Assembly: GCA_965240325.2 (NCBI GenBank)
Contig: OZ251224.1
Coordinates: 2,046,001-2,110,000 of the forward strand
Length of the DNA stretch: 64,000 bases
DNA from: Rebecca billardiae RCC1528
Lineage: Eukaryota; Protista; Haptophyta
Reading direction: 5' to 3'
Shown: in pieces, positions 16,608 through 45,993 of the stretch
Layout: every line of letters begins with the position of its first letter
How positions within the stretch are numbered: the first letter of the stretch is position 1
The notes under the pieces: model-generated
The model's database searches: none
Told to the model about the DNA's origin: nothing
Seen by the model: the letters and a program-made list of their open reading frames with translations, nothing else
Program-made: the position numbers and the translations under genes

Positions 16608-18209
16608 TGACCGCGTTCCGCGGTCCTTTTCCGTAGAACGAACGTAGTTCAGGGCCCGCGGTGGCGGTGCACCCTCCGTCGCAGTCGTCTATTGACAGAC
16701 CAGTTGCATATGCCCGTACAACTAGACTCCAGCGGCGCGCCGCCGCCCGCCGCGCCGGGCGGGCCCATTGCAGCCGCCGGCGCGGCGCCGATTGTGTACA
16801 GGCGGATGCGACGAGGCGTGATCGACGCATGAGCGCGACTCCACGTGCACACCAGGCCACGCGGAGCTGACAGCCAGGGAGCACGGTGCGGGGCCGCGGA
16901 TTCGTTCGGGCCGCTGCTGCTGACCGCTGTCCCCGGGGTCACCCCCCGCGCCGGCAGCGCCCGGGATGATGCACTGGTCCGAGTAGGGTTCGACCAGCGC
17001 CTGCGCGACGGCCGACAGGCGGGCGCGAGGCGTGATCGACGCATGAGCGCAACTCTACGTGCACGCCAGGCCACGCGGAGCTGACAGCCCGATGGAGCAC
17101 GGTGCCGAGGTGCGAGGGCACCGGTGATCCGGTTCGCGCACTCGCCGCGCGTGCACGGGCAGCTGACACACCTCGATCAGGCTCGGCACGCGTTGCAGAG
17201 GCACGGCCAGCTCTGGGGACGTCACGCACCACCGTCGCCCGCGCAGCTCGTCCTCCTCGTAGAGTACCGTTCAGTTCCGAGGCGTAGCCCTCGCTCAGAG
17301 TCGACCGACGATGGACTCGGATCGTCGGCGCGCCTGCTCTCTCTCAATCAAGAAGAGTTCTGGGAGACCCCGGAAAGGCATGGCAAGGGCGGCGCGTGGT
17401 GAAGTCGAAGGCTCAGAGATCGATCAGTCCGGCATCAGGCGCCGCTGCCCCCGAGCTTGCGAGAGCCCGAACACAGGGCGGCGGCTGCGGCGCCGGCTCG
17501 CGGACGCGCCGGGGCCGCGCAAGGCCGCGCCGAGGCATCGACAGGGCGGCAGGGGCGGCGGGGGCGCGCGGAGTGAGCGGGGGCACGACGAACGCGATGT
17601 CGACGGCAGTCGGGACCCGCCGCAGCCGCGCGCTCCAGGCGCCATTCGCCGCGCGCACCTGCCCATCGCCGTCCTCACCCGTCGGTCGCTCGTGAGCCTC
17701 GTGCCCGTGGCTCGCCTCCAAACGCAGGCCGCCTCTGGTGGGCCGCCGCCCGGGGCCGCGCGCGGCCGCGCGCGCCCAACCAAGTCCGTTCGCGTCAGAT
17801 AGTATTGAGATATACGCCGAGCTTGGGCCCTCTGCTACTGACCCTTGCCTTGTCGGCTCCTGATACAGATAGGGCGCGATTGAATAGTTGATCAACTGAT
17901 TCAATGGACGTACATTGTCACATCGGTTCGCGGCAATCTCACTATCAAACTAAATCGCTCGTAACGAACCGTTACGTTAATGTCACGGCCGCTCACGTCC
18001 CGTCCATCGATTGAATAGGGGAATGTCGTGGACGCGGTTATTTCTCCGTAATGCATGTGTAGAGAGGGTCTCAAAAATCGAAACTCGGTCACCGCCAGCC
18101 CTAAAAATCGCCCCCGTCCCTTTTTTCTTGATCAAAGATCTTTTTGAAACGTGGTTAGGGCCCACGGAGCGGGCTCCACGCTGCGCGTTCCGCCCTGCAC
18201 CGCGGGCCA
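16608..18209 (-). mobile_element. Asymmetric-end non-autonomous element, copy A (~1.6 kb)
   Basis: On the minus strand it begins tcA|TGGCCCGCGGTGCAGGGCGG and ends CACCGCGGGCC...AAAAGGACCGCGGAACGCGGTCA|T. Its 3' ~1.1 kb is homologous to copy E; its 5' module is homologous to copies C and D. Confidence 0.88.
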
Positions 18210-18236
18210 TGATACTAAGCTATGATGTGTCACGTA

Positions 18237-18390
18237 TATCTATCTATCTATCTATCTATCTATCTATCTATCTATCTATCTATCTATCTATCTATCTATC
18301 TATCTATCTATCTATCTATCTATCTATCTATCTATCTATCTATCTATCTATCTATCTATCTATCTATCTATCTATCTATCTATATCTATC
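18237..18390. repeat. (TATC)n microsatellite
   Basis: Nearly pure TATC array of ~150 bp between the 5' ends of copies A and B. Confidence 0.97.
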
Positions 18391-18464
18391 AGAGTTGACC
18401 GATCGTCATCACTATTCACTGGCCACTCATCACTGTGAGTGTCCCGGTAACTGGCTGAGAGTGA

Positions 18465-43166: not shown

Positions 43167-43857
43167 TGCATAGCTATATCGTCTTAGTATCGCGACGATG
43201 ATGAGTCTCACTCATGAGTGAGCTAGATGACTGTATTTATAATCATTTATCTGTTGATAGTCACGCCGGGCCTACAGTCTGGGTGCTGGTCGATGCTTGA
43301 CGATCATTGAGGCAGCTTGGCTGGGTAGTTGTTCACAACACTCAGTAGTGACTAGTGACTCACCAGTGATAGGGGCCGCATAGGGCGGCGACAACTCATC
43401 CGCCTCATTATTTAAAATATATTAAATGTATTAAGGAGCTACTCGGCGGAGCTAAATTGCTTAGTGATATATTTAACGACGTGGCAGCATCGGATAAGCG
43501 TCAGGCTAATGCTACTTCGTCGGGGATAATTAAGAGCACGCAAGCTGGACCGCGGCGTGTGGTTGATGACCGAGTCTCCGTTTTTAGTTACAGCCGCCAT
43601 GACGCGACAAGGGCTTATTGGGTATCTCCAATTTGAGCGGGCCCGCGAGTTGCCAAGATGCGTAGGAATGATTCGTCGTCTACCCCACTTTTTGAGTGCT
43701 CCAAGCGCTCTTGAGCCCGATCTGAGTCGATCTCCACTCTATCCTACCGCGGCGAAGGTTGGCGACGTCGCATCATCAACCGAAGAGCGCGCCGAAGCCG
43801 AACTGCGAAAACAACATCCGCTGAAGGAGGAGGCGGGCGCGAGATCGGTGCGGGTCA

Positions 43858-44598
43858 ATGCCACATCCCGACGACCACGAGTGGAGCGCAACGCCGACGG
43901 ACGAGATGGACGAAGGCGACGAGGGTGGCCTCCAGGACGGACACCACGCGAACGACGAAGGTGAATCGCCAGCGGCTAACACCAGCCAGCCTGAGCAGAC
44001 CATCCAGCAGCTGCAGGACGGCAATGCCGAGTGTGCGCGCGATAACGCGCCCGCAACAAGCTTGGATGAAGACGGCTCACACGGCCTGGGGGTGGAGGTG
44101 AGTACCGAGGCGGGTACCATGCCGGCACTGGCGCCTGCTGCGAACGCCTCCCCGCAAGGAGCAGACCGAGACGACGAGGAGGCCACGCCCGCGGAAACAC
44201 CAGCAGCCGAGCAGCACGCGCAGCCCGGCGGCGGGAGCAGCGACGACGCGCCGGAGCAGGAGCAGGTGTGGTGGCGTGGGACGGTCCCGAAGACATCACG
44301 CTTCCTCGGCGTCTCAAGATACAAGGGCAAGTGGCGCTCGTTCATCTGCGCGCACGGCCGATGCAAGGAGCTGGGCAAGTTCGAGAGCGAGGTCGCGGCC
44401 GCGGAGGCGTACGATCGCATGGCGTTCTGGCTCCGGCTCGACCGCAAGCTCAACTTCCCAGTGCCTGGATCAGGCTTCACTCCGCTCAGCGAGGAGGAGC
44501 TGGCTTTCGCCAATCCAAGCCGCCCATTCACGAGCACTGAGGGCCGGGACAAGCGCCAGGCCTTCAGCCATCAGGCAGCAATCATGATGGGTCAATGA
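43858..44598 (+). CDS. Truncated chimeric AP2/ERF-domain protein (one AP2 domain; tail from the GT49 gene)
   Basis: TSRFLGVSRYKGKWRSFI...LGKFESEVAAAEAYD...LNFP. Ends QAFSHQAAIMMGQ*, identical to the GT49 C-terminus. Confidence 0.72.
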   Translation: MPHPDDHEWSATPTDEMDEGDEGGLQDGHHANDEGESPAANTSQPEQTIQQLQDGNAECARDNAPATSLDEDGSHGLGVEVSTEAGTMPALAPAANASPQGADRDDEEATPAETPAAEQHAQPGGGSSDDAPEQEQVWWRGTVPKTSRFLGVSRYKGKWRSFICAHGRCKELGKFESEVAAAEAYDRMAFWLRLDRKLNFPVPGSGFTPLSEEELAFANPSRPFTSTEGRDKRQAFSHQAAIMMGQ

Positions 44599-44663
44599 TG
44601 TAGCTATATCGTCTTAGTAGTTAGTATCGACGATGATGAGTGAGATGACTGTATTTATACTCA

Positions 44664-45993
44664 TGGCCCGCGGTGCAGGGCGGAGCGCGCAGCGTGGAGC
44701 CCGCTCCGTGGGCCCTAACCACGTTTCAAAATAAGATCTTTGATCAAAGAAAAAAGGGACTGGGCGGTGTTTTCCAGAGTGGAGGAGACCGAGTTTCGAT
44801 TTTTTGAGACCTCCTTACGCATGGATTAGCGTCGAAAAAGGGCGCGTCCGCCGTCTTGAATAGTGAACAGAGGAATCAACGAAACCCACGCCCAAGTGTG
44901 CCAGGCTGGGTAATTGTGGGTAGACTCTCGTTCATCAAGTGTAGTGCGCCGCCGCAAGATGCCAAGAACGACCGTTGACATAATAGTCCAACCAACTCCA
45001 ATAGTGCGAGACATCCGCCGCAGCTATCCGTATCGCGCTCGGCGTGTCCGCCGCGTTTTGTACGCCAGTCAGTTGCGACTTGCGAGAGGCAAGACGAGGG
45101 GGCGAGCCACGAGCGACCGACTCGTCGCACTCGCGAGGGGACGGGGTGAGGACGGCGATGGCCCCGCGATGGGAGGTACGCGCGGCGAGTGGCGCCTGGT
45201 GCGCGCGGCTGCGGCGGGTCCCGACTGACGGGCGACATCGAGTTCGTGCCCCGCTCACCCCGCGCGCCCCCGCCGCCCCGTGTCGACTGCCTGCGCGTCC
45301 GCCGCGCGTCGGGCCGGCGCCTGCGCCGCGGCAGCCGCCCTTTATTCGGGCTCTCGCAAGCTCGGGGGCAGCGGCGCCAGCCGGCGCCTGATGCCGGACT
45401 GATCGATCTCTGAGTCTTTGACTTCACCACGCGCCGCCCTTGCCATGCCTGGTGCCCTCGCACCTCGGCACCGTGCTCCCTCGGGCTGACAGCACCGCCG
45501 ACCGCGTGGCCTGGCGTGCACGTAGAGTTGCGCTCATGCGTCGATCACGCCTCGCGCCCGCCTGTCGGCCGTCGCGCAGGCGCTGGTCGAACCCTACTCG
45601 GACCAGTGCAAATCATCTAACTATCCTGGCGCTGCCGGTGCGCGGTGACCCGCGGGACAGCGGTCAGTCAGCAGCAGCGGCCCGAACGAATCCGCGGCCC
45701 CGCACCGTGCTCCCTGGCTGTCAGCTTCGCGTGGCCTGGCGTGCACGTGGAGTCGCGCTCATGCGTCGATCACGCCTCGTCGCATCCGCCTGTACACAAT
45801 CGGCGCCGCGCCGGCGGCTGCGAAGTGCGATGGGCCCGCGCCCGGCGCGGCGGGCGGCGGCGCGCCGCTGGAGTCTAGTTGTACGGGCATGCAACTCCGG
45901 GTCTGTCAATAGACGACTGCGATGGAGGGTGCACCGCCACCGCGGGCCCTGAACTACGTTCGTTCTACGGAAAAGGACCGCGGAACGCGGTCA
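44664..45993 (+). mobile_element. Asymmetric-end non-autonomous element, copy E (1330 bp)
   Basis: tcA|TGGCCCGCGGTGCAGGG...GGACCGCGGAACGCGGTCA|Tttatctgttg. The paralogous empty site at ~43242-43256 reads atcatttatctgttg. Confidence 0.92.

Follow-up and report, generated by a model that had tools for sequence, protein, structure and literature searches.

What moves a set of repeats that agree at their two ends and share no common interior? The question is raised by a 64,000-nucleotide (nt) stretch of the haptophyte alga Rebecca billardiae RCC1528 (GenBank assembly GCA_965240325.2, contig OZ251224.1, forward-strand positions 2,046,001 to 2,110,000; hereafter, the window, in which position 1 is the first letter and to which all coordinates refer). 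It holds five full copies, A to E, of an element that runs 5′-GGCCCGCGGTG...CGCGGTCAT-3′ in each case, together with orphan fragments of its 5′ end. From the sequence of the ends and of the sites into which they are inserted, we conclude that the copies probably form a family of non-autonomous rolling-circle transposons of the Helitron2 type (HLE2).

A family that shares only its ends

Both ends recur in the window well above the expected number. The 25-nt 5′ motif, with at most three mismatches allowed, occurs five times (0.01 expected), as does the 17-nt 3′ hairpin (0.11 expected). Nhmmer models of the two ends recover five 5′ ends, two 5′ stubs and five 3′ ends, including the 5′ end of copy D, which carries small insertions, and give no further matches in the window. 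Each of the five 3′ ends is paired with a 5′ end in a consistent orientation at a spacing of 1.3–2.9 kb, and the family adds up to 9.1 kb, or 14% of the window. These results agree with the original prediction, which listed five copies and a fragment with positions that prove right to 1–5 nt. The fragment itself needs revision: a 5′ stub had been placed at 9273, and a stub is present there, but it begins at 9274 and is the first of two orphan 5′ ends in tandem. Sixty-six nucleotides downstream of the second stub, at 9453–9463, GGTCCGCGGTG differs from the 5′ terminal repeat by a single mismatch and may be a third, more decayed 5′ end.

The sequence common to all copies is limited to ~100–290 bp at the 5′ end and 65–95 bp at the 3′ end. 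In pairwise BLAST comparisons, the interiors of A and E are rearranged and 80–91% identical, those of C and D are 74–88% identical, and that of B is unique, so that no interior is common to all copies, as had been proposed. Copies A and E are 99% identical in their first 71 nt and last 95 nt, compared with 80–91% in their interiors; the ends are therefore far better conserved than what lies between them. This strong conservation of ends relative to interiors fits propagation from several master lineages.

Architecture of the termini

The 5′ terminus opens with an 11-nt inverted repeat, GGCCCGCGGTG, that begins at nucleotide 1. In single-stranded form, each full copy is predicted to fold over its first ~50 nt into a hairpin in which nt 1–9 pair with nt ~42–50. 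In the outer stem of this hairpin, the terminal GGCCCGCGG pairs with CCG(T/G/C)GGGCC, which stands just before AAC(C/T)ACGTT. The fold has z = −3.1 to −3.5 in copies A, B, C and E and, in an alignment of six 5′ ends, the predicted partners pair in 92% of cells, compared with 31–57% when the partners are slid along the sequence.

At the 3′ terminus, an 11-nt inverted copy of the 5′ repeat, CACCGCGGGCC, lies 46 nt inside the end and is perfect except for one mismatch in copy C. It overlaps GGGCCC..AACT(A/G)CGTT, a direct copy of the stretch after the 5′ hairpin, and is succeeded by a ~15-nt spacer, the hairpin GACCGCG-GAA-CGCGGTC and a final AT (CT in copy B). Within the window, exact CACCGCGGGCC is found only at element ends, and the same is true of the 16–17-nt direct repeat GGGCCC..AAC(C/T)(A/G)CGTT, which is present near both termini. 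Both features had been predicted, the inverted copy at ~45 nt from the terminus and the direct copy of the GGGCCC.. motif. The 3′ subterminal region is predicted from this arrangement to be a second partner for the 5′ repeat.

The 3′ hairpin consists of a 7-bp stem and a GAA loop, ends 2 nt before the terminus and is intact in four of the five copies; a 3-nt insertion degrades that of D. Its earlier description as a 7-bp GAA hairpin followed by AT holds for A, C, D and E, whereas copy B, which was said to end differently, departs from it by one base only, as CT replaces AT and gives an 8-bp stem. The hexamer CGCGGT is found near both termini, set 4 nt in on the 5′ side and 3 nt in on the 3′ side; because CCGCGG is palindromic, the bases of this direct repeat also form the inverted repeat.

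Insertion sites

Copy E can be compared with a paralogous empty site. A tandem duplication at 43125–47243, with a unit of ~1.43 kb, takes in ~700 bp from the start of an AP2-domain gene along with the region upstream of it; its first unit holds a truncated gene copy (open reading frame (ORF) 43825–44595), and copy E sits in the second. The two units (43125–44557; and 44557–44664 plus E plus 45991–47243) are 92% identical. The empty unit reads GTATTTATAATCAT followed directly by TTATCTGTTG, and the filled unit reads GTATTTATACTCAT, then the element (GGCC...GGTCAT), then TTATCTGTTG. The insertion amounts to exactly 1330 bp at TCAT^TTATC, that is, between T and T, with no bases duplicated or lost. 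With TCAT present at either edge, the breakpoint is fixed only to within 4 nt, an ambiguity that is resolved by the TNAT flanks and the constant 3′ TCAT of the other copies.

These flanks are highly regular. Six of the seven 5′ ends are preceded by TNAT (TTAT, TTAT, TCAT, TGAT, TTAT and TCAT; P ~4e-10 using the local AT-rich flank composition), and the copies sit 3′ of this motif in AT-rich intergenic DNA. The exception, copy C, follows GGTC; a degenerate upstream 3′ end was considered as the cause of this odd flank and set aside, the similarity being unconvincing. On the other side, the copies close with TCAT, of which TC is part of the hairpin stem (B instead ends TCCT), and the next base is A, A, C, A and T in the five copies, the T belonging to E. 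The simplest reading is cleavage 3′ of TNAT at both ends, with the TNAT of the target on the left and the TCAT of the element itself on the right.

The same junctions could also have been left by a cut-and-paste family with a DDE transposase, the copies being deletion derivatives that resemble miniature inverted-repeat transposable elements (MITEs) and duplicate a 2-bp AT target. In A, D and E, GGCC...GGTC does have AT before and after it, and the empty site of E, with its single AT at the junction, gives a string formally indistinguishable from that of a 2-bp duplication. The extreme ends also have a weak inverted similarity (~7/11 by eye, unscored), which arises because CCGCGG is repeated. 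However, the extreme termini are not true inverted repeats, which makes a DDE origin very unlikely: the perfect inverted copy is confined to one end, 46 nt from the terminus, and, the CCGCGG core aside, the two ends show no relation in length or sequence. Furthermore, the specificity on the left spans four bases, the TCAT on the right is constant with its TC in a hairpin stem, an AT duplication is mismatched in B (AT/CT) and C (TC/AT), and no DDE domain occurs in the window ORFs of at least 170 amino acids.

Coding capacity

No copy has coding capacity, and the family is non-autonomous. Pfam matches with E < 0.01 are absent from all 115 open frames of at least 55 amino acids within the copies, and Rep, Helitron_like_N, PIF1 and DDE domains are absent from the 131 window ORFs of at least 170 amino acids. 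The statement that no transposase ORF is present is thus upheld; it extends to the longest copies, which carry no transposase domain, the extra length of D being a nested long terminal repeat (LTR) element.

Compositional measures give the same picture. The range of GC content among codon positions is 0.24–0.36 in real genes of the window, compared with at most 0.19 in copy interiors, and the sole higher stretch within the copies (0.26) is inside the nested LTR element of D. Likewise, codon-usage log-odds range from 0.14 to 0.35 in real genes, and no open frame of the elements exceeds 0.04. When the interiors are searched against the window, blastn finds only stubs, and the tblastx matches are low-complexity noise. 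A captured gene or a decayed transposase in the interiors was rejected for want of a Pfam match or a codon signal, and an origin from a structured RNA or a tRNA (as in short interspersed elements) was rejected as no Rfam or tRNA matches appear.

A tyrosine-recombinase element, either a Crypton or a non-autonomous DIRS/Ngaro-like derivative with a circular intermediate and split or inverted repeats, would account for direct and inverted repeats at asymmetric ends and for an insertion that, where tested, lacks a target duplication. Such an origin is exceedingly improbable here. The ORFs of the copies have no recombinase or reverse transcriptase domains in Pfam, the copies have neither an internal complementary region nor LTRs of their own, with repeats of 11–17 nt only, and the combination of a hairpin and a tetranucleotide is typical of HUH enzymes.

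Probable assignment to Helitron2 and a proposed model of transposition

Helitron2 elements are defined by a 5′ asymmetric terminal inverted repeat (ATIR) of 8–15 bp located 0–2 bp from the end, a 5′ hairpin that uses this ATIR, a subterminal 3′ ATIR situated upstream of a 3′ hairpin, and the lack of a target-site duplication (PMC3627910). In the family described here, the short 5′ repeat begins at the first nucleotide and is predicted to take part in a 5′ hairpin in all full copies, and the subterminal inverted repeat precedes the 3′ hairpin in five of five copies. Because the ATIR, both hairpins and the insertion sites match published Helitron2 elements, we file the copies as a probable new HLE2 family, which would add a family to a kind already known and not introduce a further kind of element. 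A Helitron2/Helentron layout had already been proposed from the asymmetric repeat and the 3′ hairpin. Both stand, and they are now joined by the predicted 5′ hairpin, one insertion without evident duplication and the TNAT flanks.

Several observations weigh against this assignment. The insertion-site evidence comes from one empty site, that of copy E, where AT on either side of the element is also readable as a 2-bp target duplication. HLE2 elements are usually inserted between two Ts (PMC11417382), a rule that on the 3′ side fits E only. The 3′ repeat, at 46 nt from the end, falls outside the 20–30 bp given by Bao and Jurka (PMC3627910), although it is within the range of FoHeli1/2, the Helitron2 elements of Fusarium oxysporum, whose 3′ repeat is ~20–40 bp, and up to 51 bp, from the 3′ terminus (PMC5148889). 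The six aligned 5′ ends contain no compensatory double substitutions in the 5′ hairpin; as the 5′ arm is invariant, covariation speaks neither for nor against the fold. Finally, no RepHel gene lies within the window, so that membership in HLE2 is read from the anatomy of the DNA alone.

A different HUH enzyme might use the same anatomy, either a Replitron-type Y1 Rep or a Y1 of the IS200/IS605-like ‘peel-and-paste’ kind that nicks after a tetranucleotide beside a hairpin at each end. The TNAT left flank, the element’s own TCAT at the right end, the hairpins at both ends and the apparent lack of duplication all agree with this, and a tetranucleotide with a hairpin is the logic of IS608-type elements too. 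To our knowledge, no IS200/IS605-type transposase is known as a nuclear eukaryotic transposon, which counts against the second form of this explanation. The first draws on the Replitron-like CGCGGT near both termini and on the 16–17-nt GGGCCC..AACYRCGTT direct repeat near both ends. Short direct repeats at or near each terminus and a palindrome at the right end characterize Replitrons, HUH elements that occur in algae, tentatively including haptophytes; they are transposed by a Y1 Rep that lacks a helicase and has an adjacent oligomerisation domain (PMC10288648). However, an ATIR with a 5′ hairpin built from it is a signature of Helitron2 that is not described for Replitrons, and Replitron-1, whose insertions follow RG, makes target duplications that vary and right ends that are fuzzy (PMC10288648), compared with the clean right end of E. 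We consider a different HUH enzyme unlikely. Slightly less likely again is its more specific form, in which a helicase-less Y1 HUH enzyme, Replitron-like or a eukaryotic equivalent of the IS200/IS605 TnpA, nicks after TNAT next to the hairpin of either end in a peel-and-paste-like nuclear system and the Helitron2-like termini have arisen by convergence.

Under the Helitron2 assignment, the copies would be mobilized by RepHel, a Y2 HUH nuclease with a PIF1-like helicase, supplied by an autonomous relative elsewhere in the genome. RepHel would nick one strand after TNAT at the 5′ junction and unwind it 5′ to 3′, and a second nick would fall after the element’s own TCAT. The product would be a single-stranded circle, with ...GGTCAT joined to GGCCC..., that is pasted 3′ of another TNAT. 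As only the ends would be needed, the interiors could differ between subfamilies.

Should the assignment be confirmed, Haptista (Pavlovales) would have a clearly delimited family of the Helitron2 type; our literature search found no paper that links Helitrons to Pavlovales or describes a haptophyte Helitron family. Because the family occupies such a share of a gene-rich window, it matters for the annotation of compact, GC-rich algal genomes, in which copies of this sort are misclassified or left unclassified by current tools. The clean TNAT^ and TCAT^ junctions, each with a hairpin beside it, would also make a simple substrate for the study of nick-site choice in HLE2, which is much less well understood than that of the canonical Helitron. 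The positions of all copies and their parts are given in Table 1.

Table 1 Positions of the Helitron2-like copies, their terminal parts and associated features
Feature	Positions	Strand	Length	Details
Copy A	16607–18208	minus	1602 bp	5′ flank TCAT
Copy A, 5′ hairpin	18159–18208
Copy A, 3′ inverted repeat	16653–16663
Copy A, 3′ hairpin	16609–16625
Copy A, terminal AT	16607–16608
Copy B	18466–20324	plus	1859 bp	Unique interior; 5′ flank TGAT; ends TCCT
Copy B, 3′ inverted repeat	20270–20280
Copy B, 3′ hairpin	20305–20323			8-bp stem
Copy C	26208–27541	plus	1334 bp	First base A instead of G; 5′ flank GGTC
Copy C, 3′ inverted repeat	27483–27493			One mismatch
Copy C, 3′ hairpin	27523–27539
Copy D	36830–39681	plus	2852 bp	C-like copy (~1366 bp) plus nested LTR element; 5′ flank TTAT
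Copy D, 3′ inverted repeat	39620–39630
Copy D, 3′ hairpin	39660–39679			Degraded by 3-nt insertion
Copy E	44665–45994	plus	1330 bp	5′ flank TCAT
Copy E, 5′ hairpin	44665–44714
Copy E, direct-repeat motifs	44710–44725 and 45944–45960
Copy E, 3′ inverted repeat	45938–45948
Copy E, 3′ hairpin	45976–45992
Copy E, terminal AT	45993–45994
5′ stub 1	9274–9355	plus		Element’s first ~76 nt; 5′ flank TTAT
5′ stub 2	9356–9387	plus		Element’s first 32 nt; directly after the TTAT closing stub 1
Paralogous empty site for copy E	43243–43247	plus		TCAT^T in first unit of tandem duplication
Nested non-coding LTR element in copy D	37151–38631	plus	1481 bp	Resembles a terminal-repeat retrotransposon in miniature (TRIM); outside the family

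Nested and neighbouring repeats

Copy D is long because an LTR element is nested in what is otherwise a C-like copy. The two 287-bp LTRs of this element (TG..CA) are identical; a primer-binding-site-like TGGTATCGGCGG follows the 5′ LTR, a purine tract precedes the 3′ LTR, and the element is flanked by a 5-bp target duplication, CGCGT, the uninterrupted form of which is found in copy C. The identity of its LTRs suggests a very recent insertion.

Other repeats lie close to the copies. Copies A and B are arranged head-to-head with 257 bp between their 5′ ends, and a (TATC)n microsatellite of ~40 units at 18229–18390 fills most of this gap. A Copia-type LTR retrotransposon at 27577–31037 begins 36 bp downstream of copy C; it has RVT_2 in an 862-amino-acid ORF, near-identical LTRs of ~414 bp (TG..CA) and a 5-bp duplication, CATAG, and at 3.5 kb is short for Copia. 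Between the Snf7 and formin genes lies a foldback-like element (3828–4909) in which two 400-nt arms with 100% complementarity enclose a 282-nt spacer. TTGAG, a 5-bp direct repeat, borders it on either side, and the element resembles a very young DNA transposon with long terminal inverted repeats, or a MITE.

Genomic setting, relatives and activity

The window is ~65% GC, with AT-richer intergenic islands and the long, mostly uninterrupted ORFs of ordinary nuclear genes. These genes encode a protein kinase, a DDX51-like DEAD helicase, a formin, an RCC1 protein, a SIR2 protein, a UbiA prenyltransferase, a mitochondrial carrier, an NhaA antiporter and an AP2-domain protein. For the RRB1/GRWD1 orthologue, the nearest match is that of Diacronema lutheri (66%), followed by Pavlovales sp. 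CCMP2436 (58%), and D. lutheri keeps RRB1, Snf7 and formin as neighbours, which places the host among haptophytes related to Pavlovales and apart from D. lutheri itself. The three genes lie within ~9 kb in D. lutheri and are spread over ~30 kb here (2589–9257 and 31990–33375), with transposable elements between them; this is microsynteny with expansion or rearrangement driven by transposable elements.

Beyond the window, neither the 5′ nor the 3′ pattern of the family has a match in JGI metagenome contigs or GTDB genomes. A looser 3′ pattern gives five matches, all of which we attribute to chance, as they fall in GC-rich bacterial coding sequence and lack the AACTACGTT motif and the hairpin. 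Around the RRB1 orthologue, nhmmer searches with both end models find nothing in 22 kb from D. lutheri or 13 kb from a further relative, a sample far too small to mean absence.

Recent activity, as the original prediction had it, is not borne out. The closest copies differ by 9–26% in their interiors, and the insertion of E postdates a duplication, the two units of which now differ by 8%. Short Logan contigs of the read sets ERR14847148 and ERR14847151 are 99.97–100% identical to the window, and at the locus of copy C, the only one retrieved, the site is filled in both. At the 5′-nucleotidase locus (22972–26280), the two read sets differ by one single-nucleotide polymorphism in 3.3 kb and may represent two haplotypes or two closely related strains.

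Comparison with known systems

Canonical Helitron1 elements share with this family a 3′ hairpin, its apparent lack of a target duplication and, presumably, rolling-circle transposition. They differ in that they start with TC, end with CTRR, insert between A and T and have neither inverted repeats nor a 5′ hairpin. We rejected membership in Helitron1, as its terminal signatures are absent from ends that read GGCC... and ...GGTCAT and that carry inverted repeats.

Replitrons may resemble the family in their HUH-type layout, orientation specificity, near-terminal direct repeats, right-end palindrome and short non-autonomous derivatives; they move by copy-and-paste and are without an asymmetric inverted repeat and a 5′ hairpin.

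Helentrons and HINE/DINE-1 elements have an HLE2 architecture of short inverted repeats and a 3′ stem-loop, the defining feature of Helentrons being a transposase with an AP-endonuclease domain (PMC11417382). The repeats and the stem-loop are the same here, whereas the T^T target rule is not clearly followed.

The closest likeness is to Helitron2 itself, as represented by FoHeli1/2 and by Helitron-1N1/1N2_CRe of Chlamydomonas (PMC3627910). FoHeli1/2 have a 12-bp ATIR, hairpins at both ends and TNAT as target (PMC5148889), and tandem 5′ ends have been described for HLE2 (PMC11417382, PMC5148889). The families differ in their terminal sequences, GGCC.../...TCAT here compared with T(C).../...ATTTT, with no sequence similarity to any of the families compared; in addition, the 3′ hairpin here is 2 nt from the terminus and the 3′ flank is not consistently T. 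What they have in common is an ATIR at nucleotide 1 with a 5′ hairpin, an 11–12-nt subterminal inverted copy before the 3′ hairpin, no apparent target duplication and, in the case of FoHeli1/2, orientation-specific insertion 3′ of TNAT. Non-autonomous Helitron2 copies likewise share their ends only and can have tandem or duplicated 5′ ends. The layout is also that of the end-point recognition model of Bao and Jurka for Helitron2, in which the 5′ repeat has a partner in the 3′ subterminal region (PMC3627910).

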